From Octopus bimaculoides (Eukaryota): DNA of 32,774 nucleotides. Where the stretch lies: the NCBI RefSeq assembly GCF_001194135.2, contig NC_068987.1, forward strand, positions 11,480,419-11,513,192, in the 5' to 3' direction. A program made the position numbers and the translations under genes. The notes below the pieces were generated by a model. The model was not told where the DNA came from and made no database searches. It was given only the letters and a program-made list of their open reading frames with translations. Positions within the stretch are counted from its first letter, which is position 1. The number at the start of each line of letters is the position of its first letter. Shown one piece after another: positions 7,085 to 30,360 of the stretch.

Positions 7085-7370
7085 AGTCAAGAGAAAGACG
7101 ACTCTGAGGGAAAGTCTGCCACTGTAGACAAGGAAGCCAGCATCATTCAAGACAACCCAGAGATCTCGGCTATGCTTAAAGAAAATGCAAGTGCAGTGGC
7201 AGCTGGTGGAGGAACTATAAACCATGATATTAATGGTACCAATACAATAAAATGTGAGGCAGTTGATATAAAAGAGGAAATGAAAGATGTCATTCCAAAA
7301 TCCAAAGATGGTGGGACCCCAGCCAGTACTAAGGCATCTCCTAACTCACTCACCAATGGCAGTAATACCG
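7085..7370 (+). CDS. BCL9: BCL9 first visible coding exon (SQEKDDSEGK...MLKEN...IKCEAVDIKEE...NGSNT)
   Basis: Acceptor ttttttattttcag|AGT at 7084/7085 and donor ACCG|gttagt at 7370/7371. Open frame throughout and ends in phase 1, matching the downstream exons. First in-frame ATG at 7172. Confidence 0.75.
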
Positions 7371-7622
7371 GTTAGTAATATACACTAAATTTCAACTTAA
7401 ATTGGTGTTGAGGATGATGATGATGGTGATCAACTTTGAAAAATTTAACAAGGGAGGTTTTTTGCTGCCAATTAATAAAATCGTTATAGCCACTATTTGG
7501 TTCATACTCTAAAACGAATGCTCGTTTTCTCAAAATTGGTTCTTGGAACCCAGGTTGAAAACCACTGTCAAGGAACATCTTCAAATTATCGATTGCTATA
7601 TATATATATATATGTATGAATG

Positions 7623-7657
<35 letters not shown>

Positions 7658-7916
7658 ATGTATGAATGTATATATATATATATATGTATGTATGTATATG
7701 TATATATATTTTTTTATAATTCATTTGGAGTAAAGAAAAATATGAATTGCACTAAATCTTATCATTTTAGAATAGTTTGGAATATTTTTGTGTCTGAGCA
7801 GATTATTGTTACAAATAGACTCATATTTAATGGGGAAAGGTTGATTGGCATTATTTCTAGCAATGTCAGCAAGAAGACAAACTTTTCCTTCCATCTGATC
7901 TGCTTACAGATCAGAT

Positions 7917-7967
<51 letters not shown>

Positions 7968-8216
7968 GCTGTTGCTGATCCATTTCTACTAGATTTTCAC
8001 TTTTCAAATTCTCTTTAAGTTAGCTTTTAGCATCGTTCATCGAATCAGGTTTCCCTATAAGTTTTCTCCCCTACAGCTGCACACACATTGTGTCACATTG
8101 AGAGGGGAGAATACTCTTATAGCAACATGATTTGCCTACAGCATGCTAAAGGTTAGTCACCCATGCCAACGGGAGAAAATATTTGAGGAAGGGAAAAAAA
8201 CAACCTTGTTTTGTGG

Positions 8217-8249
<33 letters not shown>

Positions 8250-8479
8250 ATTCTGAGATAAAATGCTGTGTAAGGTTTACTGTCTTTCGTTCTTTCAGGC
8301 TTGATAAAATAAATCCCAGTCAAGAACTGGGTTGGTTTAAATCTCTCTCTCTCTCACTCACACATACACACACAACTTTTGACCATGCACCTCACATTAG
8401 AAATAATTATCAAGTTGTGAATTAATTATCACAGAGTTGTTATTCAAACTAAAGTAAAGTAAAAGTTTGATCTTCCCTC

Positions 8480-8697
8480 TCCTGGTATCCATCTGTCTGA
8501 AACTGCTCCTAGTTCTATCATACCTGTTTTAAAGTGATTTGAATTAAAAGCTTCCATCAGAGTTTCATATTAATTTTATGTTCCAAACACCAGCTCAATT
8601 ACAACAAAGTTATTTTACTAAATTCTGAATTGTTTTCAAAAATTAATTGAAAGAAAGGTATCGTACTTCATTACAAATACAGTAATGAAAGGATTAA
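8480..8697 (+). mobile_element. TTAA-type MITE family E, degraded
   Basis: ttttaaagtgat...cttccatca...ttatgttccaaacacc...aaaggattaa, shared with 17880-18326 and 25204-25409. Confidence 0.65.
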
Positions 8698-8875
8698 TGA
8701 CTATAAGTCCAAATGTAGCAATGGTGATTAACGATATTAATTGTCCGTAAGAGGGTAATCAATTAAGAACATGTCTTTTTTTGTGTGCTTATTTCTCCAT
8801 TTTAATCCAGTTAACTACAATCAAAAGAATAGCTATTTTTAAAGATCTCAGAATAATTTTAATAAAATTGGGTCC

Positions 8876-9086
8876 TTGACCCTTTAGCAATTAAACTGAC
8901 CATATCCAGCCCAAATATTCTATCCTTTTTATGTTCAGAGCAACCAGATCCTGCCTCTTGCACCTACCCTACAATGTCATTCTAAAGATAGTTACATTGT
9001 CAAAATCATGAAGCTATGGGATAAAGCATGATTGATTCAAAAAAATTTCAATAAGCATTATGTTTATCTAAATGCTAAAGGATTAA
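8876..9086 (+). mobile_element. MITE family D, complete copy
   Basis: Terminal inverted repeats ttga-CCCTTTAGCA ... TGCTAAAGGA-ttaa. Confidence 0.85.
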
Positions 9087-9150
9087 GATGTTAGAGTAAA
9101 GATAGGTGCTTTTGAATTGTGTCCCTTAATGTAATAGGTCATTTGGAAGT

Positions 9151-9791
9151 TTAGCCCTTTAGCATTCAAATCAAATCAAATCAAATTTACTGGCAGGAGA
9201 AGAGCACAATGTGCTTAAGCCATGTAAAAAAAAAAAAAGAAAAACAGTTATTGTTATATACAGTTTTATACATAGTTGCGATAGTTGTCTAGACCCTCTT
9301 TGAACAAGGGAGTGGTAGGCAGTTGAATGACATCTTGTGGTAGCTTGTTCCACGGAGCTGCAATACAGACAGAGAATGTAGCCTTCCGCCTGTTGTGTCG
9401 AAAGTGTCGGGGATAGTGTTTGCTATCATGCCCACAAAGACCCCTGTCCGGCACGGGTGAAAAACTTTGCAAATGGTAGGTTTACGTTTCTGTTGAAGAT
9501 GTTGGCAGCCAGGATGAGATTTTCCCGCATCCTCCGACATTCGAGTGATGGTAATGCCAGCTGTTGGAGACATTCCTCATATGTAAGCTTAGACAAGCCC
9601 GCAAGATTACTCTGTCAAATATAATGGTTATTTATTCTCATTGTTTTGAATTAATCATGCATTATCTTGAAGCATTTAAGTTTCAATGATGTGATTGTTT
9701 ATTTTTAGAATGACATTGTAGGGTAGGTGTGAATGGCTGGATCTGGTCAGGTAGAATATTTTGGCCAGACATGGCTGGTTTAAAGGGTTAA
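9151..9791 (-). mobile_element. MITE family D, inverted copy split by the LINE insertion (pieces about 9151-9167 and 9604-9791)
   Basis: The left end ttagccctttagcattc resumes at agattactctgtcaaat and ends aagggttaa. Confidence 0.8.
9168..9603 (-). mobile_element. CR1-type LINE, 5'-truncated 3' fragment (ORF2 C-terminus plus (TTTGA)n tail)
   Basis: Minus-strand translation with one frameshift: GLSKLTYEECLQQLALPSLECRRMRENLIL...//..RGLCGHDSKHYPRHFRHNRRKATFSVCIAAPWNKLPQDV...FKEGLD. This matches the CR1 YEERL..L.L.SLE.RR.RGDL / RGH..KL / WN.LP pattern. Confidence 0.85.
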
Positions 9792-11120
9792 GGCACTGGA
9801 TTATTGACCAAGCACTCTTCAGTTATGTCCCTTGACAATATAGGTAATTCGTTTTTTTTTTGCCTCAGTGTGTCTGGCTGACAAAAGGGTTTCTATTTTT
9901 CTCTATAGTTTAGCAATTTGCTGCATGGACAATGAGCTATAAAAGCAAATCAGTTCTGGAAAAAATACAACTTTACAGTTTTGCTGTACCTGCTACAAGC
10001 CATGTTAGCATGACAAAATAAATAAATAAATAAATAAAGTACTTATAAATTTTAAATTATCTCTGCATATTGTATGCCAAAATGAAACATCAAAAATATT
10101 AAGTTACTAAGAAAAATGATAATTGTGAACTAGTTTAATCAGAAATTAATCAATATTCTTTTGGATTCTGGCTGAATAATTTAGTAGCGAAGCCACTGGA
10201 CTGCCCACTCATTCACTCCTTGTTCCATAAAGCATTCAGAGATTTATATGTTCATCTGATAAAGCATTTAGTTGGCATCAAAAAGATTGTTGATTTCTTC
10301 TCCAATTGGTTCTCCTGCTAATTTTTATTCTTTATATGTTTAATGCTTCATCTTAAGCATCTGTCATTTCCTAGCTTATAGACTTACTCAGTCACTGGTG
10401 CACACTCACACACACACTTATACACTCACACACTCTCTCTCTCTCATTCTTACGCACGCACACTAACTAACACACGTATCTACTACGTCTTTCAGTTCCA
10501 CTTCGGAACACAGCTTAACTGTAAATTGTACCATTTCCCTGCAGTCTTGTTTGACCGATTGTGTATGCTTAGCATTTGAATGCAAAAGAAAAATGGCGAC
10601 AAAGTGAAAGAGAGGCAGCAACAACACATAATCCATCATTAGGCTGAAAGACTGTCCAAGATTATCTCGTTCTTTGGTTCTGCTTACCTTTCTAACATCA
10701 GAAACATTACTATTACCTATCTTGTCAGACATAATCCTTCTTTCTTGTAGTTTAATCCATCTAATACCAGTGTTTCATTTTGGAACTCTGTTTACGCTTT
10801 TCTGAGGTTACCTTCAAATTTGATATCACGGAGAAGTTTATTTTGATTTAGTTTATAGCTAATAAATAATGGTTCGACAGCTGAATGTTTAAGGTACCAA
10901 CAAAGAGTTGGAGGAGATGAGTTCAAGACCCAACTGCCTGTATGTGTTCTTGTTGAATTAGCCTTACCCAGTTTTGCTTTGAGCATAGCTGTAGCAACAG
11001 AGGTAGGCTGTCAAAAAGGAAGTAACTGTGCAATCAATCAAACGACCCTCTACAAACTCTCTTCTGCTAAATTTTGTGTGTGTCTGTGTGTCCCATAAAA
11101 CAGTAGTCCCTCCCCAACCA

Positions 11121-11636
11121 TAGCATTTCACCCAGCTTGCTAACGATTCTGCCAGTTCACTGCCTTAAATGGTTTCGCATTTTGGTCCAAGGCCAACAGG
11201 TTTGGGGGAGGGGCTAGGTTGATTACTCCCCCACCCCCACCCCACCCCACCGTACTCAACCGGTACTTAAATTATCGTCTCTGAAAGGATGAAAGGCAAA
11301 GTCGACCTTGGTGGAATTTGATCTTAGAACGTGCAGAGAGATGAAATGCCACTAAACATTTCGCCCAGCATGCTAACGATTCTGCCAAGACATTTCCTTA
11401 ATAGTAATAATTATAATGATAATCCTTTCTAATATAGGCATAAGGCCTGAAATTTTGGGAGAGGGGTGGGGGCTAGTTGATTACATCAACCCCAGTGCAT
11501 AACTGGTACCTAATTTCTCAACCTCAAAAGGATGAAAGGCAAAGTCGACCTCAGCAGAATTTGAACTCAGAACATAAAGACAGATGAAATGCTGCTAAGC
11601 ATTTCAGTGTGCTAAAAATTCTGCCAACATAGTGCC
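11121..11636 (-). mobile_element. Tandem cluster of SINE family B: head fragment 11121-11164 plus copies at about 11170-11387 and 11421-11636
   Basis: Repeated aaaggatgaaaggcaaagtcgacct and ctaa(cga/aaa)ttctgcc in the same orientation. Confidence 0.85.
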
Positions 11637-12523
11637 TTAATAATAATAATAATAATAATAATGACAAGATTTGAAAGTAACTCCCTTGAGTATTTTTCCA
11701 TATTTAGTTTTATACCTTAAAACAATTTTTCTAAATTTAAGTATTCTTCTAATCAGATGATTGACTCAGGTGGTTCCCCACCCCCGCCCAATTCAGATGT
11801 GTAGGCATTATTATGTAAATAGTTGTAAACAGTTTTCTCCATAACAGTGTCATTCAGACAACACTGGTAGACTTGTTTTGCTGCTTGTGGTGGTAGTCAT
11901 GGCTGTTATGTGTTCTTGTTAGCTGTTTACATTTAGGTCTTTGTTAATTTCTCTGATTTAATGAACTGATTTTCCATATTGAAAGTAGCCAGCACTGTCC
12001 AAATGTTTGCCGACAATTATTGCAATTATATAGCTTGAAATAGTTTTGTTCATCATACATGCATATATATATATTTATGTGTATGTGTACACAGGAATCT
12101 TATAGATAGATGGCCATGTGTACTTTTAGGAATCCAGTTGGTTTTCTGAGTCAATGTAGAGTATTCTCAATACATCTGTGCCTCTGTGTGTGTGTTTGCT
12201 GCTTGTGCATTTAATTTCACTTACTAATTCCTGTATTCACCTATATTCAGTGAACTCCTATACCTGCACATATATATGCACACAATAGGTTCACTTCCCT
12301 TCCCACTCATGCACTCACAGCCCTTCGTCTAAACATGTGAGTATGAAATGCTGAAATGCTTTTGCATATAAAATCATAAATGCCTGTATCATGTTTATAA
12401 CGGTTGTTAATGATTTGTGTATGACAGATTCACATGAAAAACAGCTACTTTATAAGAAAGAAACAAACATCAGAAAAATCTTTTTAAAAAATGTTTATTT
12501 TGTTTATAGTTTGTATATATATA

Positions 12524-12645
12524 GGCATAGGAGTAGCTGTGTGGTAAGTAGCTTGATTACAAACCACATGGTTCTGGGTTCAGTCCCACTGCGTGGCACC
12601 TTAGACAAGTGTCTTCTACTACAGTCTCGGACCGACCAAAGCCTT
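12524..12645 (+). mobile_element. SINE family A, 5' part (ends at ccgaccaaagcctt)
   Basis: Aligns with 18363-18484. Confidence 0.85.
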
Positions 12646-12646
12646 C

Positions 12647-12895
12647 CCTTTTGATGTTGGCTACCCACAGCTTTCCGGCTGGATTGGTGCACTATTTCCT
12701 GAAGAAGATTGGTTTGGAACCCAAATGACTGAAGAAAGCCACCAAGGAGACAGCCATGGCAGCTAAAATCAGATCAAGGTGGCGATGGTTGCTGAAAGAC
12801 TGCAGGTGGGGCCCTTCCACAGGTGTAGCCTAATTCAGTCCTCAAGGCATAAACCTTGTGATCCCTGAGATAATTGCTGATGATATGGAAGAGTT
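12647..12895 (+). mobile_element. 3' fragment of an RLE-type (Hero-like) non-LTR retrotransposon
   Basis: PFDVGY/HSFPAGLVHYFLKKIGLEPK*LKKATKETAMAAKIRSRWRWLLKD (one frameshift, one TGA). It resembles the P(V/I)EVGCRGF...AAE..SRWLWL C-terminus of such elements as I recall it. Confidence 0.6.
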
Positions 12896-12912
12896 TCCAA
12901 CATTGTGATCAA

Positions 12913-13047
12913 TTCTTTTCTACTCTAGGCACAAGGCCCAGAATTTTTGAGGGAGGTGGGGCAGTCAATTAGATACCCTCCAGTATGCAACTGGTACTTT
13001 ATTGACCCTGAAAGGATGAAAGGCAAAGTTGACCTCAGCGGAATTTT
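12913..13047 (-). mobile_element. SINE family B, 3' part
   Basis: caactggtac...gaaaggatgaaaggcaaagttgacctcagcggaattt. Confidence 0.8.
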
Positions 13048-13309
13048 AGAGTAGTTTCTGCATCAGGCAGGGCATCTTGAGTGTTTATTGCCTTTACTCT
13101 TGCGTTTTGTGTTCTATTAAAAATTTATCCTCTAAAATTAATTTTAAAATACACTTGATGAGAAATGATTAAAACCTGGTTGAAATCGTGTGGTTAGCAT
13201 TAATTAAAGTTCCCCTTATTAGTTGAAAGATATAATAATGACTTGGTTGTGTGGGTTTGTCAAAAATCACAAAGTTTAAAATACATATCCACATATTCTC
13301 TGTATCTTG

Positions 13310-13645
13310 GGTGCAGGCATGGTTATGTGGTTACAAAGCTTGCTTTGTAACCATGTGGTTTCAGGTTCATTTCCTTTGCATGCCACCTTTTACTATAGCC
13401 ACAGGCTGACCAATACTTTGTGAGTGAATTTAGTTGATAGAAACTGTAAAAAATTGCCATTTATGTATGTGAGTGTGTGTGTGTGTTTTTGCATTGTGTT
13501 TGTCCCACTTCTTGGCAACCAGTGTTGGTCTTTTCAACAAGGGACCGCTAGAATAAAAAGTCCTGGGGTTGATTTGCTCTACTAAAACCCTTCAAGGCAA
13601 TACCCCAACATAGCCTCAGTCTAATGACTGGAACAGTAGTAAAGA
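13310..13645 (+). mobile_element. SINE family A, degraded full-length copy
   Basis: Head ggtgcaggcatggttatgtgg, internal (TG)n, tail aagtcctggggttgatttgctctactaaa...aatgactggaaca. Confidence 0.7.
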
Positions 13646-13754
13646 TTTTACTAGACGCGCAAAGAATTGCCCAGTACCATCCCATAGCTTTTCAGCATAC
13701 TCTCAAAAGATGTTAGTACTTTAGCTCTGCTTTATATAAGAATAACCAGGAATG

Positions 13755-13875
13755 GGACAGCCTTTCAGTTCTTTCTACCAAATTCACTGACGAAGCATTG
13801 GTTGGCCCTCAAGGCTTTAGCACAAGACACCCATCTGACTGCAAAATAAGCTTCTTAAACTACATAGCCATGCCT
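13755..13875 (-). mobile_element. SINE family A head, degraded
   Basis: ctttcagttctttctaccaaattcact...aagcttcttaaactacatagccatgcc. Confidence 0.55.
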
Positions 13876-15479
13876 TACTTACCTTTGGTTAAGAAACTAA
13901 ATAACATGGATACTTCTGGCTTAGAAACCCAAATGCACGTACCCACACACACACACCTACACCTCATTGGCTCAGTTTGCTTACAATTGTTTGGTTGAAG
14001 GGTGTAAAACTGATTTACTATAGAAAACACTCTTTTGTACTTCTGCTGTTGCCATATCTACTTTATATTTTTTGGTATTTGATGAGACTGTTTCCTATAT
14101 CCTTCCTGCCGTCTTCTGTGGCAGAATTTCTATAAAATAAAAACACAAATTGATGGTACAATGGAAAAACTATGAACATTGCCAAAGTTTTCTGTGTTTT
14201 TTTTTTCTTCTTTTTTAAATGGACCTGTTACATTCTCCTAGTAAAAACAATAACTTACTAACACATACCAATTTTCACACACATCACACACGCATGTATT
14301 TATTGTTCTTTTTTCTTTTGTAGTTGTGTCTATGATTCATTGCAGAAATTATGTCTTAAATCTCTATGATCTTCTGTGAGTGAGAAATAATCTTGCGCAT
14401 ATGAAAGTTAATAAATGAATATAATCTTTCCTCTTTTTACTCTCACTTTCTGATGCCATAAACTCTGCCAAGTTTTGAATTCTCTTGCTCAATCAGCTTG
14501 TAATTACTCTGTGTCTTTTAATGGTTGCTTGGCTCAGTATCTGCTGCGGTGCCTATCACTGGCAGTGTAGCCTGGCTTCTCTGATCTTGGCATGCTGCCA
14601 AACCAAGGGCAATATCATCCATATTATAAATATACAACAGGAGAAAGTTTGTGGACACACATGATATGTGCCATCTTTAGGTTTCCACTTCCTTTTACTC
14701 GACTGTTATTTGACCCGGTGCCAACACGGCGACTACGTACGGCTGAGGAATCTATTCCGATAATATGGCAGTTAAGCATCTGCAGATCTCCACTATATTT
14801 TATCTTCAAAACTCTAATGGCAATCAAATTTCTAATTGAGCTAAATTTCTCTGTGTTGCATCTGTAAATTTCATTCTACCAACTAAATACAGACTGGTTA
14901 GTTTATACATGCCATTATGAAGAATAGCTTAGCAAGTATTTGTATGAATTCATGCACACACACACACACACACATTCTTTAATATGTACAGTTTTTCCTT
15001 TATATGCCTATATAATAAATATAAATACATACATATACTCACACACACAAATTCTAAACAAAGCTGATGACTTTGTTTTTTTGGTTTTCTCATATCACAA
15101 ATCTTGTTAATATTAGTTAGTAGTAGTGGTAGTAATAGTAGTATTAGTTTAAGTGCATAGGAATTTTGGAACGTAAAGTATTTTTCTGTATGTAGTAGGC
15201 ATTTAAACTTGCAGTTTGTGCCATGTAAATTTTGAATTTATATTCTCTATATCAGAATATATTACTGAAAGCATGGCTGCATTCTGAACGCTTTTCTTTC
15301 AGTTTGTTTCCTTAACTTGTGTAATTTTGCCTTCATTTTGACTATTTAGTAAATATAAATATTTTATGGTGTTTTCATGGTGTTATGACGCAGACTACTC
15401 GAATCACTAGGAAAACATTGGAAAATATCATTAAACATTTAGGAAAATAAACACCAAAAACATCCAGAAGTCAAGGTAT

Positions 15480-15560
15480 ATATATATGGATAGATAGATA
15501 GCTAGCTAGCTAGCTATAGATATATAGACATAGATAGATAGATATAGATAGATAGATATG
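15480..15560. repeat. (GATA)n/(GCTA)n tetranucleotide microsatellite
   Basis: Directly visible. Confidence 0.9.
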
Positions 15561-16260
15561 AAAGAAAATTGTTTAATGTAAATTTATATTCATATTTTAA
15601 TAGTTATTTGCCTTAATGGAGAGATGTTACCTAAATACAGTACTTGAATATTGTGTATGCATGTGTGTGCATATTTACGTATATAGATATTATAACTTAG
15701 GCATTATCCTACTTAAGTGTATATAAATGTGCATAAAAATATGCATACACACACACACGCGCGCGCGCGCACACACAAACAAACATATATAACTGACATA
15801 ACAAACTTTTGATTAAATCACCATTTGAAATTTACTGTGGATTGCTATTAGATATTGTCTTTTTACTTGTTGAGCTCCATATTTTGTTATTTGCTTACAA
15901 ACTGCAAAACCAAAATGGAATGTTCCATTCTTAATGAATTTCCATTGCAAAGCAGCAAACAGTGTACTATTTTTGTCATCTTCCATTCTTCTTACAAACT
16001 ATTTCTTCCTTGTTATCTATGCACACTACATTGGAGTACATCTTTGCTTCTCTTAGCTCCTGTGCTGGGGGGGGGGGGTTGTTTTGTGTTTGTCTTGTTT
16101 TAGCCTACGTCTTTTTTTTATAATTTTTTAAAATTTATTCAGCCTTGTTCATTGTTTACTGTATTAGGGACAGCAATCAGCTAATCACTGCTCAGATTAA
16201 TTAAGAGCTTAGCCCATTAGAATCCTAGCTGAAATGATTTTTACTTTTTCATCTCAACAG

Positions 16261-16317
16261 ATACTCAGATTAAAACTGAAGAGTTGCCCCCAAAGATTAA
16301 ACAAGAGAATTCTGAAA
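16261..16317 (+). CDS. BCL9: BCL9 57-nt symmetric (phase 1/1) microexon, (D)TQIKTEELPPKIKQENSE(S)
   Basis: Polypyrimidine tract tttttactttttcatctcaacag| and donor |gtaagt. Length 57 = 19 codons, open in the BCL9 frame. Confidence 0.8.
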
Positions 16318-16750
16318 GTAAGTTTACCCTTTCTGTCTTGTGGTGCGCATTTCTTCAATTAATAACAACAACAATAATAATAATAAATGAAAAAGAATGG
16401 ACAAATAAAAATCCCCTCCCTCCAATCCTCCTATACACATACACAATATCCTTTTTTTTTTCTTCCCCTTTTTCCTTATATACTTGACTGTCTGATCTGG
16501 TGTGTATGCGTACGCATGCATGTATCTACATATGTACATACAAAACGGCAGCTTCTCTGCTTATGTATGTGTTGTGGTATTGTTTTGATACCCAATCTAG
16601 TTAGGTCATCGGTTTTATGTTGACCTCCCCTTTGAAACTTCTCTAGAATGCAGACACATACTACAAATGTAAGCAGAGATGGTGGAGGGCATGCATGCAA
16701 AGGTAAACAGACGCTCACGTACCAGTAATACATGTGAGTGAAGATGATTA

Positions 16751-17085
16751 CATCATCATCATCATCATCGTTTAACGTCCGCTTTCCATGCTAGCATGGG
16801 TTGGATGATTTGACTGAGGACTGGCGAACCAGATGGCTACACCAGGCTCCAATCTGATCTGGCAGAGTTTCTACAGCTGGATGCCCTTCCTAACGTCACC
16901 CATTCCGAGAGTGTAGTGGGTGCTTTTACGTGCCACCGGCATGAGGGCCAGTCACACGGTACTGGCAACAGCCACACTCAAATGGTGTTTTTTACGTGCC
17001 ACCTGCACAGGAGCCAGTCCAGCGGCACTGGCAATGACCTCGCTCGAATGTTTTTTCATGTGCCAGTAGGCGACGCTGGTAACAT
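16751..17085 (-). mobile_element. SINE family C with internal ~63-bp sub-repeats
   Basis: (cat)n cgtttaacgtccgctttccatgctagcatgggttgg...ctggatgcccttcctaacg; the motif ttttacgtgccacc is repeated. Confidence 0.85.
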
Positions 17086-17182
17086 GTGGCTGCAAACTCT
17101 GGTATGTGTAGCTAGAAATTAAGGTTCACATTTAACTTGTGCAAAGATATCCATGTAGTCCTTGTGAACTATATGGCAGCTT

Positions 17183-17378
17183 TACTGGTGCTGGGGTTAT
17201 GAAAAAGCATCCCAATACATGCTGTGAAGTGGTTTGCATTAGCAAAAGCAAGAACATTCATCTGTGGAAACTGTGTCAAAGTACTGAGCAGGAGTCAGTC
17301 CTTGGACTCGTCGGATCCTATCAAACTGTTCACTCATTCCAGCATGGAACGCCAACATTAAACGATGATGATGATAAG
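17183..17378 (+). mobile_element. SINE family C, degraded, opposite orientation to 16751-17085
   Basis: Ends ccagcatggaacgccaacattaaacgatgatgatg. Confidence 0.7.
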
Positions 17379-17879
17379 ATATGATGTGTATCTTTTATAT
17401 ATATGAGGAGGTCTACCATACATACAAGTATACATAGCTTCAAACTTAGGTGCACATACATTGTTTAGCTTCACCCACAATAATCAAAGACATACAGAAA
17501 AAAAAAATTTTGTAAAAAAAAAATAGGAAAGAAATTTTTTTTTTTTTGTGAGATTATTCTTTTTTAAGGTTGGTTGGTTTGTTTGTTTCAAGAGAATTCC
17601 TTAAATTTCTTTCCAGTTTGCTTTATATTATATTAATCAATTTGTTTGTGTTTAATACTCCTCCAATATTTACACAAATTCAATGTTTTATTTGAGTGTC
17701 ATTCCTTTCTATGATTTGTTTAAAGCTTCGTTATGGCATTAACAAAATATTGGCTCTGTATTCATGCATAATTGAGCTTGGCGAAAAATTTGAATCTGCA
17801 AGTTTGGAAAAACCTAGAGGTGGATCACTGATAAAATTCTGTACTGCAGGTGTTGATATTACAAGTCCCAAAATCTTCT

Positions 17880-18326
17880 TTAAACCTTTTGATACCAACC
17901 TGCTGACACTACCCCTGGTTCTATTCATGACTCAATCTTCCTGATTTAAAGTGATCTATATCAAACCCAAACCTTCCATCAAAATTTCATGATTTATGTT
18001 CTAAACACCTTTTGGTTTCAAATTCTAAGACAAGGCCAGCAATTTTGGAGAAGAAGTAAGTTGATTACATTGGCCCCAGTGCTCAACTGGTACTTGTTTT
18101 ATTGGCCCTAAAAGGATGAAAGGCAAAGTTGAACTTAGTGAAATTTGAACTCAGAATGTAAAGGTAGATGAATTGCACTAAGCATTTTACCTGGCGTACT
18201 AACAGTTCTGCCATTTTGCCACTTTATAAACACCAGGTTATTAATAAGTTATTTAACTGAATTCTTTCATTCTCTTCAAAATTAATTAATTATCATTTAA
18301 CAGAAATATGATGATGAAAGGGTTAA
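17880..18326 (+). mobile_element. MITE family E, complete, interrupted by a SINE B insertion
   Basis: ttaaaccttttgatacc ... aaagggttaa termini. Confidence 0.8.
18010..18226 (-). mobile_element. SINE family B nested in MITE E with 8-bp TSD taaacacc (18002-18009 / 18227-18234)
   Basis: Direct repeat on both flanks, with a family B body between them. Confidence 0.8.
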
Positions 18327-18362
18327 AGCCTCCTTGCTTAATAAAACCTAAACGTAAATACA

Positions 18363-18630
18363 GGCACAGGAGTGGCTGTATGGTAAGTAGCTTGCTCACC
18401 AACCACATGGCTCTGGGTTCAGTCCCACTGCGTGGCACCTTGGGCAAGTGTCTTCTACTATAACCTCGGGCCGACCAAAGCCTTGTGAGTGGATTTGGTA
18501 GACGGAAACTGAAAGAAGCCCGCCGTATATATGTATATGTATATATATATGTGTGTGTGTCTGTGTTTGTCCCCACCAACATCGCTTGACAACTGATGCT
18601 GGTGTGTTTACGTCCTCGTAACTTAGCGTT
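18363..18630 (+). mobile_element. SINE family A, 3'-truncated
   Basis: ggcacaggagtggctg...gaaagaagcccgccg(TA/TG)n...gtaacttagcg. Confidence 0.88.
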
Positions 18631-18990
18631 AGCACATCCTCTAGCTCCCTACTGTTTTATTAGCCGATTGGTTGGTTACTTGGCTATTTGTGTTACTGGG
18701 TTCTTTCTTTTGAACAATGATGCTTTCTGTTATGTTCTTCTGGTGCCACTTATATAGACATTCGTGTTACACAGCTAATGCAGATGTTGTATTTAATTAG
18801 TTGCGCATATTATGTATCAAATGCAACAGTTTATGGTATCAATCAGTTCTTTTTTAGTTTTGTTTGTTTTTTTTTTCTTAGTTTTCTTTCCAATGTCTGT
18901 TTTTTTAGACTATTGTTCTCGGTGCCTTCTTATTTACTAGGCTTGTACTAACATCTCTGTGTGTGTGTGTGTGGTTGTTCTCTACTAGTC

Positions 18991-19041
18991 NNNNNNNNNN
19001 NNNNNNNNNNNNNNNNNNNNNNNNNNNNNNNNNNNNNNNNN
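18991..19041. other. Assembly gap (51 N)
   Basis: Run of N. Confidence 1.
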
Positions 19042-19648
19042 TTGTTCTCGGTGCCTTCTTATTTACTAGGCTTGTACTAACATCTCTGTGTGTGTGTGTG
19101 TGGTTGTTCTCTACTAGTCTGAATAATGACATAAAAGCATGTGTATGTATGTATGTGTACATATATGGTTGCGGAACTATTTGAAAATAAAAACATGAGA
19201 ATTAAATAAATAATGTTGTAAAAATCAGCATTAACTCTTCTCTTTCTGTCATTATTTATATAATTTTAGCTTGACCCAGCATTACACACATCAGCAGCAT
19301 TCATATCGTGTTGCTTTGATAAGAATCATTCCATTCTTATCAGATGTGAATGACAGATTTGCTGATCATAGCTGAAGAAGTGAAACAAAGCAGAAACATG
19401 TACGTCCTACAACCCTGTGATGTTATTCACAGCCTATCCTGTGTCCGGAGACATGTTTAAGGGGAGAATTTTCTCCTAGGGCTATCTCTGCATCAAGAGT
19501 TTCTTCTCAAGTCCAAATGCACTTGAACATGTTGAATATGACTCTAAACAAATAAACTTGTGAATTTGGGGGCACAGGTGTGTGTATGTATATGAATGTA
19601 AACAAAAATATTCTTGTTCATTAATATATCGATATGCACATGTATGTA

Positions 19649-19842
19649 AGGTGGCACGCCAGGCAAAATGTTTAGTGGTAGTTCATCTGCCTTTATATTC
19701 TGAGTTCAGATTCCTCCAAGGTTGATTTTACCTTTCACCCTTTCAGGGTCTCTAAAATAAGTACAGGTCAGCACTGGGGGTCGATGTAATCAACTTAGTC
19801 CCTCCCCTCACATTGCTGGCTTTGTGCCAAAATTTGAAACCA
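19649..19842 (+). mobile_element. SINE family B, degraded
   Basis: ctgagttcagattcc (B box), taagtac...ctgggggtcgatgtaatcaac. Confidence 0.75.
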
Positions 19843-19945
19843 GTGTGTGTGTGTGCATCTTTGACCATGTGCTTATATTTAAGTGTGTGCATATGTATCT
19901 CGTGTGTCTGTGTGGACAGATGTCTAGTACTAGCACTACATGTTC

Positions 19946-20017
19946 TTAACCCTTTATTGTTTAAACCGGCTATATCCGGCCCAAATATTCTATTCATTTT
20001 ATGCTCAAACTGGCCAG
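19946..20017 (+). mobile_element. MITE family D, left part
   Basis: ttaaccctttattgtttaaaccggctatatccggcccaaatattc. Confidence 0.7.
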
Positions 20018-20226
20018 AACCACACACATATACATACATATATATAATACATATACATACATATATACACACGCACACACACACACATATAAATGTATGT
20101 ATATTTTTTCAATGTGTATGAATAACAAGGAAAAAAAACAGCTAGTTACCAGGGTAGCAAAAATTCACACAAGCGCCAAAGATATTACAGACTATCTATA
20201 AAAGTAGAAATTCCATGGTTGAGCTG

Positions 20227-20235
20227 TTATCTATA

Positions 20236-20300
<65 letters not shown>

Positions 20301-20451
20301 TGGGCTTCTTTCAGTTTCTGTCTACCAGATCACAAGGCTTTGGTCAGCCCGAGGCTATAGTAGAAGACACTTGCCCAAGGTGCCACACAGTGGGACTGAA
20401 CCCAGAACCACATGGTTGGGAAGCAAGCTTCTTACCTCACAGCCACGCCTG
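20227..20451 (-). mobile_element. SINE family A 5' half ending in a ~70-bp (TA)n tract
   Basis: gggcttctttcagtttctgtctacc...cttacctcacagccacgcctg, adjoining (TA)n at 20227-20297. Confidence 0.85.
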
Positions 20452-21640
20452 CTGGATTTTTACAACCTTTCTGCAATAAACTAAATCCTAAATGCCCGTA
20501 TTAAATGTAAATCACCTTCTGCTGGAAGAGTGTTTTAATCAGCTGGGGACATTGTGGTACCTATCTTGACAAAAGGATTTATGTGTATATATGCACTAAC
20601 ACACACACACTTCAGTTTGTTTGGTTTCTAGTCCAGCAATTTTATACAGTCCTTCAATGCGACATCTGGTTATCCAGAACCTATTCTTCTAAGATGTCCA
20701 GTTTAAACAGCTGCTTGTTTGTTTGGACTGCTACTGCTACTACTGCTGTTTTTAAGTCATTGCTTATCCTGTACTTGTTGTTTGCCGTTCGCCCAACTTA
20801 GCTGTTATCATCTTCGTTTCTTTAAATTATACTCAGTGTAAAATTAAATTGTGTGTGACTATTTAAAGTTGTTGATAAGGTGGAGTGAGTTTGTGTGGAG
20901 AGGGAAACTATAGTATCTGTAAATGTTTGTTCAAAATACGTTTTGTTTACATATTTTCATTTTTATGTAAATACAAACACGTACACACACACACACACAC
21001 GCCCACACACTCATACATTTTCAAATCTATTGCAATCAACAAATCATTTACAATACGTGAAACTTGTTTGGTAATAAACACCGAAGAAAACTACAATTTA
21101 ATCAGTATTGAATTTAATTGCAATATATTTCTCCCTCGTGCATTTCGTTTTGCTACTTTAAATAGAAAATTTTTTTTTTTTTCTATTTAAACTCTTTCAA
21201 ATGGTTAAGTCGGAGTCGGAGTGTTTTTGTGTTTATGTTCTAATGTATGTGAATTAGTTATCAGAGACGTTTAGCAATTTCTACTTCATACTCTGTCACT
21301 TGTGTTAATTCTAACTGTCGCAAATTAAATTAAAGTAAGATGGAAGAGTGTGCATGTGTGTGTGTGCAAAACAATCTAGTGTAATTAGTTTCCAAAAGAA
21401 AAAAAAAAGGACGAAAATTCCTTTATATGGTTGTAAATGTTGCGAGAATGATTAGGTTGTTGTTACTGATATTATTGTAAGTAAGGCAGTAGTACACCTC
21501 GTGTGATTAAGTGCATTTTGGTGTTTGATCATCCTGTTCTGTCTGGGCCACTGGTCTTTCTGCAAACAAACAGCAATAAACTACAAAGAACTCCAGACAA
21601 CACATCGTAATGTGTTGTACACTCGCCACACCAATGAACC

Positions 21641-21780
21641 ATCATAATCATCTTTCAATGTCCACTTTTCCATGTTTCCTGAGTGGGTCAGGTGGAATTT
21701 GTTGAGGCAGGTTTGGATGCTCTTCCTGTCACCAACCTTCACCTGTTTCCATGCAAGAATAGAAACAGACACCTTCCATT
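21641..21780 (-). mobile_element. Family C-related SINE tail fragment
   Basis: atcatctttcaatgtccacttttccatg...ggatgctcttcctgtcaccaacc. Confidence 0.55.
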
Positions 21781-21971
21781 TCCACTGCAAAAGAAAAAAA
21801 ATGTTCCTTCAAATACTCAGACAGGTTGAACATGGAGCACTATTACAACATCTTAATAACTCTCTCTCTCTGCTGTGTTGACAGGTTTGCACTTAAAATT
21901 CCCACATTTTAGTTACTATGGCGACAACACTACTTATCTATTTTCTCTCTCTCTTCTCCCGCCTTCTCGAT

Positions 21972-22051
<80 letters not shown>

Positions 22052-23444
22052 TATTCCTCTTTCAACAACTTTTTCTCTTCCCTTTCTTACCTCTGTCGAA
22101 AAATTTGTTGTGACGGACAGACAGAGATCAGTTTTCTTTTATAGTATAAGACTTGTAATGACATAAACGTCAGGCTGTGTCGTGTCTCATCACAAGCAAA
22201 TCCAAGTATTGTGTTTCTGTATGAAGCTTGCCATTACGAAGATGCTTTTTATTTTTATTTTTTGTCGAAAACAAAAGAAAGTGCTTGCTCTGAGTCTACA
22301 TTTTGTGGTGCAGGTGTAAATATCTTGACTTTGTAAAAGGTTTGACCTAACCTGAGAACAAAATGTAATAGATACATGGTGAAGGATTTCTCGTGTCTGT
22401 GACCGGACTGTCACAGTCCAAACCAGGAGTTCTACCTGTTGGTTTATGCAATATTGGATTTCCCCTTGTTTGGAGGATTTGAGAAAGAATGTGCAAGATT
22501 GTATTAAAAGAACAGGGTGGATGTGAAGATTTGATATAGACACAAAATATTGACTCTTAAAATAGAACTTCATTCTACCATCAATGATGCTTTTTTGTTG
22601 TTGTTTTCTTTTTACATCTTGCAAATGCTACATAGCTAAATGGGAAGTGGAGGGAGGCTTTATGCTCAACATGCTAGAAATAGCAACTAAATATCTATCT
22701 CTCAAAAAGGTAGGAATACATAATGTAATCCTAGATGTTTATAAAAACATAAAAGATACATTCAAGTGTCTATCGTTGACAAGACCAAGGAAGGTCAAAA
22801 TTGTGTAATCTGAGGGTAGTGGGGATTTATCTCTTGGCTAGCAATATAAACAAGAGTGCATTTTGCAACCAAATGTCTGTCAGTAATCTACCACAGTATA
22901 GTTTGTTCTAATAGAACATCCACATTTATGTGGAGATAAAAGACATGTTGGTCAGGGTTGACTTTGATCTGAATAACAACTACTAACCTTAAAAATATTA
23001 TTCAGTTATACACAGAATTACCACGACTTGAAAACTAACCAAATAATAGAATTTTAATCATACTAGTCTTACTCAGTTTGTGAGCAATCACAAAGTTCAA
23101 CCATAATTCAATACTATTGTAAAAGTCCTGACTGTAATCTTTTAAAAGCAAAAGCTTATATATCTGTATTTCAACAGTCTAAATAACATTACTGGTTAAT
23201 GGAATCAGTTGATTTCTCTTTCACCTGCTGCGTCTATGGTTTTATATTAAAAAAAATATTTGTTCTTATCCTTTGAGACCTTGTTGCAGTTGAAGAATTT
23301 TACCTCAAAGAGAATTAACAAATGTTATAACCAGGAATGTGACCAAAGCAAATTCAATGACTCTCTTTGTTGACACAACATCGACAAGAATAATAACTAG
23401 TATATTTTCAAATATTCCTCCATTAGTCTGTAATGGTTCATCTT

Positions 23445-23640
23445 ATCTGTGGCCATATCCAGCCTGAATATGCTCTCTGTTTTATGTTCAAATCAGCCTG
23501 TCACACACCTACTCTACAATGTCATTCTAAAAAATAAATCTTGGAAATCTCGAAGCTACATGATAACACATGCTTACTGCAAAACAGTGTGAATAATAGT
23601 TATTACATTTGATGGAGTAATTTGGATACTAAAGAGTTAA
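23445..23640 (+). mobile_element. MITE family D, degraded, ~130 nt upstream of the HD1 exon
   Basis: ggccatatccagcc...ctacaatgtcattctaaaaaataaa...taaagagttaa. Confidence 0.7.
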
Positions 23641-23768
23641 ACCACAATTTTCTACTGGTAAAGAGAACTGACCAGGTTTATAGCAAGTTAATGTCCATTA
23701 TTGGTGAGAATAAACCTCAGCAACTATTCCGTTTATATGTTTATACATCTTTCTCCTTCTTTTTTCAG

Positions 23769-24253
23769 GTGCAGAAAACATTGGTCGGTCACCTGGCTCT
23801 AATGACCTATCAAGGACTCCATCAACGACAGTGGGCCCCCCAACCACACAAACTCTCCCTGTTCCCTCACAGACTCAATGTACAAACTCTGGTGCACCCC
23901 AACCACTGTCAGTTGGCAACAGCTCCAAAGCTGCCCAGCCCAACTGCCCTAATCCTCAGGGACAGGTACATCCTCAAATTGCACCACAATGTGGTCCAGG
24001 ACAAGGCCCGCCTTTGGGCCAAACACCCCCACAACAATCTCCTGGAATGCCCCATCCTAGTATGGTTTCTCCTAACCATCAACAGCATCAGTCAACAGGT
24101 CCAATTGATGCACATTTTATGCAGCAACATAGTCAAATATTTGTTTTTAATACGAGTTTAGCCAACCAAGCTGCAGATTCTTACCGCCAAGGTCAGCATA
24201 AATCCATTTTAGCATTTCATATGGATCAACCAAGAACAAAGCAATTTTTACAG
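23769..24253 (+). CDS. BCL9: BCL9 exon with P/Q-rich linker and HD1 (Pygopus PHD-binding domain)
   Basis: Acceptor ttctccttcttttttcag|GT and donor CAG|gtaagt. Encodes IFVFNTSLANQAADSYRQGQHKSILAFH (from 24137), matching BCL9 HD1 VYVFSTEMANKAAEAVLKGQVETIVSFH. Confidence 0.93.
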
Positions 24254-25437: not shown

Positions 25438-25545
25438 CATCATCATCTGTTTTCCATCGGTTCTGGCCTGAGTTTTTAGGTTGGATGCCCTTCATAATGC
25501 CAACCACTTATCAGAATGTACTGGTTGCATTTTACATGGCACCAT
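25438..25545 (-). mobile_element. Family C-related SINE fragment
   Basis: (cat)n...ggttggatgcccttcataatgccaacc...ttttacatggcacc. Confidence 0.6.
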
Positions 25546-25788: not shown

Positions 25789-26397
25789 AAATTTCCTCCA
25801 AAAGGCAACCAATTTAACAGACCTCCAGGCGGAATGAACATGTATAATATGGCCAATATGCACCAACAAAACATGGGTTGTATAAAGAATACAAACATGA
25901 ACAATATGGGGCCCAGCCCTAATTCATTAGTAGCTCAGTGGGTGCAACAACAGAATGCTAACCTCCAGGAGCAAGAATTCCTTAATTACTCAAACAACCC
26001 AAACATGATGGGTCAAGGTCAAGGTGGAATGATGCCTTGGCAGGTTCCACCAGGTCATTCTTCACAGGGACAGGTGGGAATGTTACCGGATAATTCAGGG
26101 TTTGATCCTGAGCCCTACCGCATGTGTAGTAAAGGTCTTCCTCTCCCACATCGAAATTTACTGCAAGCAAAAGTTCCTGATGACAAACTCACTCCGGAAC
26201 AATTGCAGAAGAGAGAGGAATCATTGGCTTCCCTTCAGAAATTGCAGCTGTTATTATTTCCTGAAGAACTAAAGCAGCAGAGAGGATTCCCTCCGGGGGC
26301 TAACATGATACCTCCGGAGGGAATGCAGCATCCTCCAAATATGTTCCCTCTAAGCATGTCTCCACATGAGATGTCACCGCAGTCAGCTATGATGCAA

Positions 26398-26436
<39 letters not shown>

Positions 26437-27327
26437 CAACAGCAACAGCAGCAACAGCAACAGGGACTTATGCCACAGCAACCTCTTCCGTCGCAGCACA
26501 TGATGCAGCATCACCAGTTTATGATGCAACAACAGAACATGCCGCCTCAGTTTAGCCCCCAACCGGGCAACATAGAAAACATTACGACGGCGCAGCGGGA
26601 ATGGGTTCGCTTACAGCAGGAATTTTATGCTGAGAAAAGAAGAATGCAGCACATGCAAATGGCTCAACAGATGAACCCTGGTATGGAAATGCCCCCTAAT
26701 TCAATGCATGCGTCCCCCCCTTCGTATTACAGTTCCATCTCACAAAAACGACAAGGAGTCGCTGGTTTAAATGCATCTACCTCACCTAACATGAATGGAC
26801 CAATGCTGTCTCCCCCTCTATCTGGCCACGGCCATCCTGAATCTCCTGATCCTATGCATTTATTCCCTGGTCCTCGACGGGCCCCTTCATTGAGCTCCCT
26901 AGAGCAGGTTGGACTTGGAAGAATGGGTCACGGCTTCTCTCCTGGGCTTCCACCAACTGGAAATATGGAGCACCCTGTGGGTCACGTGTCTCCAGTTGGC
27001 CTGAACTCGCAATTTAACATGCCTCCTTCGGCTAAACAAAATTCAAATCTGACCCTACAGAGAGCTGGTAACCCAGAACAGTTTCAGCCTGAAATGAATG
27101 CCCCTCCAAATTCCGGTAGCAAACCTCCTCCTAGCTATGCACAGTCAACAAAACGAAAACGGGAAGATATGGATGAGATTTACAAGAACCTGCAACCGAC
27201 TCCATCACCTCAACAGCTAAATTACCTCAACGCATTCGAAGGACAAGAATTAACGATAACAAAACAGTTAAATACAGCATATCGAGAACCAAGCCAAACA
27301 GGAAATTCACAACAACCACCAACACCA

Positions 27328-27358
<31 letters not shown>

Positions 27359-30300
27359 AACCATCGCAACAGCAGCAGCAGCAACAACAACCATCACAAC
27401 AGCCACAAGCAAGTATACCACCACACCCACATCAACAACCGGGTGGTATGCCTCCTCATCAGCAAGCACCACAACAACCGCAGCAGCAACAACAACCGCA
27501 AGCAAATATTCCTCCACAAGCAAACATGCCACCCCATCAACCAGGCATGCCTCCCCATCCTCATCCTCCTCAGCAGCAACCACAACAACCAGGTATGCCC
27601 CCACATCCAGCATCACAACAACCAGGCATGCCATCCCACCACCAACCACATCCAAACATGCCCCCTCATCAACATCATTCTGGTTTACCGCCACACCAAT
27701 CGCCTATGTCTTCTCAAGCACCGCAGTCTAGTATGGCCTCGCATCACCCTCAACCCCCGGGTATGTCCCCACATCCGCAGCCACCATCCAACATGGCCAC
27801 CCATCAGTCGGCGATGAACTCCCATCAGAACAGTATACCTCCACATCCACAACCACCCACGGTGTCCGCACCACATCATCAACCTGGCGTATCGCCACAT
27901 CACCCTTCAGTCGGTCTGCCGCAACATCAACAGCCACAAGCTGGTGTCGCTACTGCTGCCCCACCTCATCCACCCGGAGTCCCCCACCAACCAGGTGTAC
28001 CACCCCATCAACAGTCAAGTATGAGCAACCAAGGAATTAGTTCCCAGCAACCCATCTCATCACAACAGCAGGGAACGTCTCAACAGCAGAACATGCATTC
28101 TCAAGCGCAAGCTATGCCTCCACACGGCATGTCACCCCAACAGGGCATACCGCCACACGGCATGTCGCCTCAACAAGGTATGCCTCCACACGGTATGTCA
28201 CCCCAGCAGGGCATACCTCCACACGGTATGTCACCCCAGCAGGGCATACCTCCACACGGTATGTCACCACAGCAAGGCATACCTCCACATGGTATGTCAC
28301 CACAGCAGGGCATACCTCCACACGGTATGTCACCCCAACAAGGCATGCCTCCACATGGTATGTCGCCCCAGCAGGGCATGCCTCCTGGCATGTCACCTCA
28401 GCAAGGCTTGCCTCCACATGGTATGTCACCTCAACAGGGAATACCACCGCACGGAATGTCTCCACAGCAAGGCATACCTCCACATGGTATCAGTCAGAGC
28501 ATGGCATCTCAACAACATGGCATTCCCCCACATGCTATCCCTCCACAGCAACCAGGCATGCCTACTGAAACTCAGAGTGGTAACTTCCCTCATAGCCAAG
28601 TCAACTCTCCAATGCATATAGCACCAGGCTCCAACAAAGGCCCCATGTCCAATTCCAGCCAATCTTCCAGCGTTGGTCCTTTGTCCAGTCCCGGTCCGAT
28701 GTCTGGACCCTCACCAATGTCCAGTGGTGGGATGCGTTTGTCTCATTATGATCCACCCTCAATAAACTGTAGCTCGAACATATCAACTGGGGGCACCAGT
28801 ACATCCAGCAGCGTGTGTTCTGCTGCTGGTAACAAATCTGGCAACATGACGAATATCACTTCGGCCAGCCTAGCAAACCTTGCAAAGGGCGTTGAACACT
28901 TGTCACATCAGATGCAGCAAAACATGATGCAAGGAGGTCCATTTCATAGCATACAGATACAAGGTAATGTTAGCAACCAACAGAATTCTACAAGCACCTC
29001 ACAGCCATCTACTCCATCTAATCTACCTACTTCTCAAAGCCAGTGTAACAGCCCGATGCCATCAAACACAGTCGTGCGCCCAGGACAAGGTTCTGTGACG
29101 CCAGATACAATGGCACAAGGTCAGATGCCTGGAGTTAATAACACTTTCATTAATGCTAATATGCAGATACAACAGCTGAATATACAATCTGTTGACGGGC
29201 CTAGCTATAGTCCTTCTATGCAGGTCCAGCAAGTTCCTAATGAATCTTCCCAAATGAACATGGGACAAGTATCTGCGCAGAGGTCGTCAGGGCCTCTGCC
29301 ACCACAACAAGGTTGTGCTGGTCCAGTTCCAACATCTGTGAACCCTAATGCAGGAATGTTACCAAATGCCAGTGGGCATCCTCCCACGAGCAAACAATCG
29401 AACTCCAAGTCAGGGAACCCTCCAAACCTCATGATCAACTCAAATTCACGCATGACACATTCACCAAACTTTCCTGCAAATTCTGTTGGCAACGCCAATA
29501 TCCAAATCCAAGCTAAAGCCCCCAACACCATCCAATATCTGCCAGCACAACCTGTTCAGAATTCACAGAATATGAATACTAAGCAGCAGCGGCCGGATTT
29601 AGACTTCATGCAAAAGCTGGCCTCACCGGGTCACACTTTAGACTGTAAACCACCTCAAAATAAAATGCCACGTTTTTCAGGACCTTCTTTAGGAGAAATA
29701 AGACCTGGTATGCCCAACCATTCTCTAGGTATGCCTCCATCCCTAATGATGCAGAACCCTAATCCTAACATGGTTGGTAATATGCCCAGTGGTGGTATGG
29801 CCAGTCCAGTGCATATGTCTCCCATGAACAATCCAATGGGAGCTCTTCCTGGTAACATGGGTCCTTGTGATATGATAGCCCCTGGAATGGGTGGACCCAT
29901 GCCCAATATGGGCGCAATGAATGGTATGAATCCTGGTGGGGGTAATGTATGTGGAGGAATGCCTCCTCATGGCATGGAAGGCAGTATGCCTCCCCATGGC
30001 ATGCCCCACCAGTTTAACCCCCAGATGATGGGTGGAGGTCCACCTGGTATGATGAACAATGGAATGATGCAGGGGCAACAGATAATGCAAGGTCATGGTA
30101 TGCATCCAGCCATGTCTATGCATGGAATGCCTCACCCAGCCATGCAGCGAGGCCCACGTATGACTGCGCCACCAAACGGCCCACCACAGGGGCCAGGATC
30201 AAATCCTGTTAGCCCTGGTTTTAGCCAACAGTTTCAACAGTTTCAGCAACAGCTTTACTCACAAAACCGCCCACGTCAAATGTCCCCCATGGGTAACATG

Positions 30301-30360
30301 ATGCCCAACCCTGGCCAGCAATACATGGGCGTGATGCCTAATATGCCTGGTCCCACTTGA
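25789..30360 (+). CDS. BCL9: BCL9 terminal coding exon (1523 aa) with HD2, HD3, low-complexity Q/P/H/M/G regions; stop TGA 30358-30360
   Basis: Acceptor tatatctcttgcag|AAA, phase 0. HD2 DDKLTPEQLQKREESLASLQKLQLLLFPEE (26179-26268). HD3 ITTAQREWVRLQQEFYAEKRR (26581-26643). IQAKAPNTIQYLP resembles the C-terminal EKPSQTLQYFP motif of vertebrate BCL9. Confidence 0.95.
26395..26463 (+). repeat. Coding polyQ tract, Q23 (includes 9 uninterrupted CAG)
   Basis: caa caa (cag)9 followed by mixed caa/cag, counted directly. Confidence 0.97.
27328..27390 (+). repeat. Coding polyQ tracts Q11-PS-Q8
   Basis: Direct translation; the tract is CAA-rich. Confidence 0.95.
28114..28473 (+). repeat. Coding minisatellite: 11 units of 33 bp encoding [MIL]PPHGMSPQQG (unit 9 lacks His)
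   Basis: Direct translation. Synonymous positions vary between units. Confidence 0.97.

Follow-up and report, generated by a model that had tools for sequence, protein, structure and literature searches.

The closest described relatives of the gene considered here are vertebrate BCL9 and BCL9L and Drosophila Legless, adaptors between beta-catenin and Pygopus, in which HD1 and HD2 (PF11502) follow each other in the same order as in the octopus protein. Two kinds of regulatory element known from other systems also bear on this locus. One is the SUMO consensus psi-K-x-E/D, a four-residue rule in which a large hydrophobic residue precedes the lysine; psi-K-x-E motifs in disordered regions are recognized directly by Ubc9. 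Synergy-control (SC) and SUMO motifs are known in the transcription factors GR, C/EBP, SF-1, and others, and the SC motif, P-x(0-3)-[IV]-K-x-E-x(0-3)-P, needs a proline on both sides. The other is the neural microexon, an SRRM4-dependent cassette of 3-27 nt; the upper length of a microexon is put at 27 nt in strict usage and at 51 nt in broad usage. The octopus exon described below resembles both and departs from both. As in the SUMO/SC motifs of transcription factors, a disordered regulatory region harbors several closely spaced [IV]-K-x-E motifs with prolines nearby, but unlike SC motifs, the octopus motifs have a proline on one side only. Like neural microexons, the exon is small, preserves the reading frame, lies between long introns, and encodes a surface or disordered peptide; unlike them, it lies above the usual limit at 57 nt and showed no skipping in 13 RNA data sets. 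We read it as a constitutive, old molluscan exon of BCL9/Legless situated within a cluster of candidate SUMO acceptor sites, and we assign this reading a probability of roughly 0.55.

The window, by which we mean the whole 32,774-nt stretch of Octopus bimaculoides DNA that was analyzed, contains the following features of this gene:

7085..7370, + strand: upstream coding exon of the BCL9 homologue (open reading frame; RNA depth is 0 past 7370, and RNA contigs lie over 7084-7370)
16240..16260, + strand: pyrimidine-rich tract and AG acceptor of the 57-nt exon, tttacttttt catctcaacag (junction 7370>16261 in an RNA contig)
16261..16317, + strand: small exon of 57 nt, phase 1/1, encoding (D)TQIKTEELPPKIKQENSE(S), present in every RNA data set examined
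16269..16280, + strand: IKTE, a psi-K-x-E SUMO consensus motif (translation)
16296..16307, + strand: IKQE, a psi-K-x-E SUMO consensus motif (translation)
16318..16323, + strand: donor of the 57-nt exon, a perfect GTAAGT (junction 16317>23769 in a contig of RNA assembly X25)
23769..24253, + strand: HD1 (Pygopus-binding) exon, HFMQQHSQIFVFNTSLANQAAD... (RNA depth, a contig piece, and a donor GTAAGT at 24254)
25789..30360, + strand: large last coding exon with HD2 and long Q/P-rich repeats, to the stop codon (Pfam PF11502; open reading frame)

When spliced, the reading frame of the window encodes 1,799 residues before it reaches a stop codon; an RNA loose end after 24253 (AAATTTCCTCC...) matches the sequence at 25789. 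The HD1 encoded in exon 23769-24253 (SQIFVFNTSLANQAADSYRQGQHKSILAFHMDQ) matched PDB 3ZPV (Legless HD1) with E = 4.7e-5 as well as PDB 2VPE/2VPB (BCL9 HD1), and alignment of the mollusc and insect homologues revealed 23 invariant columns in this domain. The beta-catenin-binding HD2 was found at residues 410-437 (LTPEQLQKREESLASLQKLQLLLFPE), where PF11502 scored 38.8 bits (gathering cut-off, 25). Among named full-length sequences, the nearest relatives were the BCL9-domain proteins of two freshwater mussels, Potamilus streckersoni and Sinanodonta woodiana, together with the "protein BCL9 homolog" of tenebrionid beetles. We conclude that the gene is a BCL9/Legless homologue and consider this assignment sound. 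The C-terminal part of the octopus protein is long, disordered, and rich in Q, P, and M, and its end resembles the mussel protein. Between approximately 26500 and 28600, the last exon encodes long poly-Q runs, one of which numbers 24 residues, and a 10-residue unit, PPHGMSPQQG(I/M), repeated about 14 times in tandem; owing to these runs and repeats, the octopus protein exceeds its mussel counterpart by several hundred residues.

Inspection of the sequence and its open reading frames identified 16261-16317 on the + strand as a 57-nt coding exon of phase 1/1. In its junction context (splice junctions marked by a slash), it reads ...tttttcatctcaacAG/ATACTCAG...TTCTGAAA/GTAAGTttac, or in full ...tttttcatctcaacAG/ATACTCAGATTAAAACTGAAGAGTTGCCCCCAAAGATTAAACAAGAGAATTCTGAAA/GTAAGTttac. 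The upstream exon, which carries the motifs IKCE and IKEE, ends at 7370 in phase 1, its last base (G) opening a codon and the intron beginning GTTAGT, and the next exon begins with GT at 23769, preceded by ttttttcAG; the 57-nt exon is therefore of phase 1/1. Its codons are G/AT ACT CAG ATT AAA ACT GAA GAG TTG CCC followed by CCA AAG ATT AAA CAA GAG AAT TCT GAA A/GT, giving the peptide (D)TQIKTEELPPKIKQENSE(S), of which the first and last codons are split with the neighboring exons. The flanking introns span 7371-16260 (8,890 nt) and 16318-23768 (7,451 nt), ~16.3 kb combined. An earlier sequence-only reading of this DNA had proposed a symmetric BCL9 exon with strong splice sites, isolated within ~16 kb of intron, and both the sequence and the junctions in RNA contigs bear this out. 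Translation likewise confirmed that the exon holds two canonical psi-K-x-E SUMO consensus motifs, IKTE and IKQE, exactly where that reading had placed them, separated by the spacer E-L-P-P-K; both have a large hydrophobic residue before the lysine and fit the psi-K-x-E/D rule. No A>G change of the kind produced by RNA editing was present within 16261-16317 among the changes listed in the RNA alignments. Two of the labels that had been attached to the exon do not hold. It had been called a microexon, a term that its 57 nt exceed under either length limit. The motifs had also been assigned to the Pro-flanked synergy-control consensus, which in its strict form is absent here: NTDTQ-IKTE-EL-PP has no upstream proline and PPK-IKQE-NSESAEN has no downstream proline, such that each motif has proline on a single side and the two share the PP between them.

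Comparison with a bivalve indicated that the exon has a long history. The BCL9-domain protein of P. streckersoni (KAK3604620.1) and that of S. woodiana (KAL3841740.1) have the same layout, the same exon phases, the DTx[IL]KTE[ED] core, and the ...KxENS[EK] end. At the Potamilus locus (L003), the orthologous exon occupies 7674-7757 and is of phase 1/1; it measures 84 nt as against 57 nt in octopus and encodes GMELDTKLKTEDSHVKMTQQKQQKENSK. The Potamilus sequence reads ccAG/GCATGGAGTTGGATACCAAATTAAAGACGGAGGAT...GAGAATTCAAAAG/GTgatc, and the exon ends ...GAG AAT TCA AAA G/gt, compared with ...GAG AAT TCT GAA A/gt in octopus. When the mussel protein was mapped onto its locus, the neighbors of this exon proved to be an N-terminal exon at 501-~686 and an HD1 exon at 10256-10567. 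Octopus and Potamilus thus have a four-exon layout in common: psi-K-x-E motifs lie on the N-terminal exon, which is followed by the small exon, the HD1 exon, and a large last exon. When the octopus peptide was placed without gaps along the mussel N-terminus, its best position coincided exactly with the Potamilus small exon (shuffle P = 0.0015), and the core DTx[IL]KTE[ED] is kept between the cephalopod and bivalve exons. A second molluscan class therefore has an orthologue of the exon that matches it in phases and position, which indicates that the small exon predates the cephalopod-bivalve split. Judged by this sequence comparison, the exon is evolutionarily old and not a cephalopod novelty.

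The sequence-only reading had known of no such cassette in vertebrate BCL9 or fly Legless. Such an exon does occur elsewhere, as shown by the phase-1/1 exon of Potamilus with DTKLKTED, and the BCL9 N-termini of beetles, a bug, and other protostomes carry two to five psi-K-x-E motifs. Of the two motifs of the exon, IKTE is kept in the mussel as LKTE, but IKQE is not, the mussel alignment having QQKE at the same place and VKMT nearby. In the beetle Zophobas (L004), the first 327 residues of the protein are encoded by one exon, showing that a separate small exon is not universal among protostomes; compared with the beetle, the molluscs place part of the motif cluster on a phase-1/1 exon of its own. 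Genomic contigs from two close relatives of the octopus (organisms B and D) had no differences inside the exon, at an overall divergence of only ~4%, and in the organism B contig over 16176-16346, the exon is identical and its flanks differ. DNA searches and degenerate patterns did not recover the small exon from the 10 kb downstream of the upstream exon in L002, a less closely related, cephalopod-like contig in which that upstream exon is 85% identical. RNA contigs of a further organism (E) gave no match to the upstream exon at 80%, and protein searches with the octopus N-terminus returned no spliced cephalopod BCL9 protein. For annotation, the locus confirms a small exon that dates back at least to the cephalopod-bivalve split and is of a kind that gene predictors can miss.

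The two motifs of the small exon belong to a larger group. Within the 1,799 residues, psi-K-x-E occurs just four times, as IKCE, IKEE, IKTE, and IKQE, and every occurrence falls at residues 55-111, N-terminal of HD1. We compared psi-K-x-E counts N-terminal of HD1 with those in composition-matched shuffles, with the following result:

Octopus: 4 observed, 0.16 expected
Potamilus: 5 observed, 0.18 expected
Three beetle-type sequences: 4-5 observed, about 0.25 expected
Homologue P0102: 3 observed, 0.23 expected
Lygus: 2 observed, 0.28 expected
A mite: 0 observed, 0.11 expected
Human BCL9: 0 observed, 0.04 expected

The shuffle P for the cluster was ~0.0002 or lower in octopus, mussel, and beetles, and for the 57-nt exon alone, two or more psi-K-x-E motifs arose in 0.2% of shuffles of its 18 whole codons. 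The octopus, mussel, and insect proteins thus carry a psi-K-x-E cluster before HD1, in contrast to human BCL9, which has none. Fly Legless presumably has motifs of the VKDE/VKEE/MKKE/VKIE type. The upstream ORF of a compact BCL9 gene from a metagenome eukaryote (L001) is without psi-K-x-E. We did not find this enrichment of SUMO-consensus lysines in mollusc and insect BCL9/Legless N-termini described in the literature, and we regard it as mildly new.

Within the cluster, the alignment pairs DTQIKTEE of octopus with DTKLKTED of the mussel and DVRIKKEDE of the beetle, and both motifs of the upstream exon, IKCE and IKEE, are kept in a related cephalopod ORF (P0002; NNIKCEAVDIKEEMKD). At other places, the alignment shows motif positions shifting among lineages. 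The start of the HD1 exon reads KVKDEP in the mussel, AVKKEP in beetles, IVKKEN in a likely cephalopod ORF (P0003), and SVKTEP in P0014; the octopus sequence at this point (23769-23800 of the window; from 10256 onward at the Potamilus locus) reads SAENIGR, without a psi-K-x-E, so that the extra VKDE of the mussel stands opposite AENIG in octopus. One might speculate that the octopus-specific IKQE compensates for the missing motif at the HD1-exon start. From these alignments, it is apparent that the cluster is conserved as a cluster while individual sites turn over. We consider it highly probable that the exon is real, that it is included where sampled, that it has a mussel orthologue, and that an enrichment of the motif cluster extends across the BCL9 proteins of protostomes.

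What the cluster does is proposed here in conditional terms. Exons 7085-7370 and 16261-16317 together encode a K/E-rich, disordered segment that precedes the Pygopus-binding HD1, and the lysines of IKCE, IKEE, IKTE, and IKQE in this segment would be direct targets of Ubc9, so that the co-activator could take up one or several SUMO groups. SUMOylation would then tune, and most likely damp, the activity of the co-activator or its partitioning in the Wnt enhanceosome, as it does for many transcription factors and co-factors, and regulation would be exerted through the SUMO conjugation and deconjugation machinery and not through splicing. Because Ubc9 recognizes psi-K-x-E in unstructured regions, we infer that the lysines may serve as SUMO acceptors whose modification tunes the co-activator; we put the chance that the lysines of the cluster are indeed acceptors somewhat below even. 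Should these lysines be in use, the Wnt enhanceosome of protostomes would gain a post-translational point of control, for which Drosophila Legless would provide an easy test system. Human BCL9 has no psi-K-x-E N-terminal of HD1, so core BCL9 function does not require the cluster. A bolder version of the proposal, which we advance tentatively and think rather unlikely, is that protostome BCL9/Legless may possess a conserved, hitherto undescribed multi-SUMO acceptor module of three to five psi-K-x-E motifs before HD1 that regulates Wnt/beta-catenin co-activation, that came to lie partly on its own ancient exon in molluscs, and that was lost or remodeled in vertebrate BCL9.

The conserved element could instead be something other than a SUMO site, such as a linear binding motif, a set of lysines for acetylation or ubiquitin, or a signal for nuclear import or retention, with psi-K-x-E arising as a by-product of K/E-rich composition. 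The literature that we searched contained no report of SUMOylation of BCL9 or Legless, and the supplementary tables of a large endogenous SUMO-site study, in the part available to us, do not include BCL9. The second site of the octopus exon is VKMT in the mussel, and in human BCL9 two I-K dipeptides, likewise spaced by 9 residues (DSDIKECNSADHIKSQDS), lack the consensus glutamate. The full consensus, however, including its glutamate, recurs three to five times per protein in mollusc, beetle, and other arthropod homologues, far above the composition-matched expectation, and such a glutamate-inclusive recurrence is what selection on a SUMO consensus predicts. Residues 119-136 of human BCL9 (P0173) are the best ungapped placement of the octopus peptide, with D, I-K, I-K, and S spaced as in octopus DTQIKTEELPPKIKQENS, yet this likeness was not significant (shuffle P = 0.07) and MAFFT aligned the human stretch with another motif; homology of the exon to the human stretch was therefore not established. 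We consider a non-SUMO element an unlikely explanation.

Less probable still is that the motifs have no specific function and are chance products of composition in a neutral, disordered linker. The region is of low complexity and rich in K, E, S, and T, the motif positions move between lineages, and the mite homologue and human BCL9 have no motifs at all, each of which would suit a neutral linker. The shuffle probabilities given above (~0.0002 or lower for the cluster in octopus, mussel, and beetles and 0.002 for the exon alone) and the retention of the exon and its DTx[IL]KTE[ED] core from cephalopod to bivalve argue against chance, and we regard this explanation as improbable. A constitutive exon within a cluster of candidate SUMO acceptor sites thus remains our preferred reading, and the RNA data bear on the first part of it.

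A 1,464-nt RNA contig from assembly X25 covers 7084-7370, 16260-16319, and 23769-24253 at record positions 1-287, 287-346, and 345-829. Since these pieces are contiguous in the record, junctions 7370>16261 and 16317>23769 are both proven; the latter rests on this contig and not on raw-read counts. The X25 loose end ahead of 23769 reads ...AAACAAGAGAATTCTGAAA. Raw RNA reads running off 7370 entered the small exon (ATACTCAG...) in 53 of 53 cases among the matches listed from three runs: 16 reads in X24, 22 in X44, and 15 in X45 continue past 7370 as ATACTCAGATTAAAACTGAAGAG..., with agreement of 1, 0.98, and 1, respectively. A read from a skipped transcript would align for two bases beyond 7370, to 7372, since GT opens the next exon as well as the intron. 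Depth past 7371 left room for at most one read to 7372, a possible skip, and this in X24 only. Ten Logan RNA assemblies (X25-X31, X37, X14, and X17), drawn from at least seven studies, gave the same picture: the sole contig reaching 7370 continued into the 57-nt exon, and no contig ended at 7372, the signature of a skip, in a type of assembly that loses rare variants.

Across these 13 RNA data sets, whose tissue labels were hidden, no 7370>23769 form was seen. The sequence-only reading had described the exon as a cassette whose inclusion or skipping might switch the SUMO load of a Wnt co-activator, and had suggested that the three junctions be counted; both inclusion junctions were found in RNA and the skipping junction was not. 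A cassette exon is one for which inclusion and skipping isoforms both occur in RNA, and here inclusion alone was seen. Inclusion of ~100% had been set beforehand as the outcome that speaks against a switch, and the switch is thereby refuted for the available samples; the RNA data do not support a splicing-controlled SUMO load on the co-activator. Most likely, the exon is constitutive, an ordinary one within a known gene and not an alternative cassette, being included at ~100% wherever sampled. That it is nevertheless skipped in some tissue, such as neurons, removing two SUMO sites and switching the co-activator, would fit its phase 1/1 (a skip preserves the frame, G/GT giving Gly), its isolation between introns of 8.9 and 7.5 kb, the single read permitted at 7372 in X24, and the hidden tissue identities of the runs, among which a rare, tissue-restricted skip could escape sampling, but is very improbable given the 53 listed junction reads and the assembled contig that all enter the exon, the strong splice sites, and the retention of the exon in the same phase in a bivalve.

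A few minor observations concern the RNA records and the surroundings of the exon. A contig of assembly X14 stops 59 letters past 7370, that is, 2 nt beyond the end of the small exon, at exactly the point where a spliced continuation (GTGCAG) parts from an unspliced one (GTAAGT). Assembly X14 has 55% of the intronic words of 15800-16800 and hence contains much pre-mRNA or DNA. At the other end of the upstream exon, X25 RNA contigs join two different sequences to the acceptor at 7083-7085. With the first (...CAAGATGGTTTTCCATAAAATGAAG/), the protein start would be MVFHKMK-SQEKDD; the second (...CCAGGTAAAAGAAAAAAGAAAGAAAACCTG/) gives PGKRKKKENL-SQEKDD, similar to the mussel start MMLPGKENL. Both sequences are absent from the window, and they look like alternative 5' exons or promoters.

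The intron 3' of the small exon contains several repeats. An (AAT/AAC)n microsatellite at 16352-16397, 35 nt 3' of the donor site, attracts masses of unrelated reads and contigs in all species tested and so inflates the depth beside the exon. At 16751-17110, 430 nt 3' of the exon, lies a high-copy interspersed repeat found with hundreds of different flanks, whose RNA depth is in the thousands (as much as ~1,900 per strand in raw runs and a word depth of 200,000 in X25); diverged pieces of it occur at 2218-2569, 17332-17375, and 25456-25543. ARAGORN predicted no tRNA-like gene in the window, this repeat included, and the repeat looks like a transcribed SINE-like element. Assembly gaps (N runs) are located at 18991-19041, in the intron 3' of the small exon, and at 30746-31105, after the stop codon. 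Inverted repeat copies that flank exons can favor back-splicing or skipping, although neither left a visible trace here. A second repeat family, with copies 80-88% identical, is present at 5400-5800 (+), 6495-6660 (-), 12515-12645 (-), 18349-18620 (-), and 20249-20452 (+), so that the introns next to exons 7085-7370 and 16261-16317 contain copies of either orientation.
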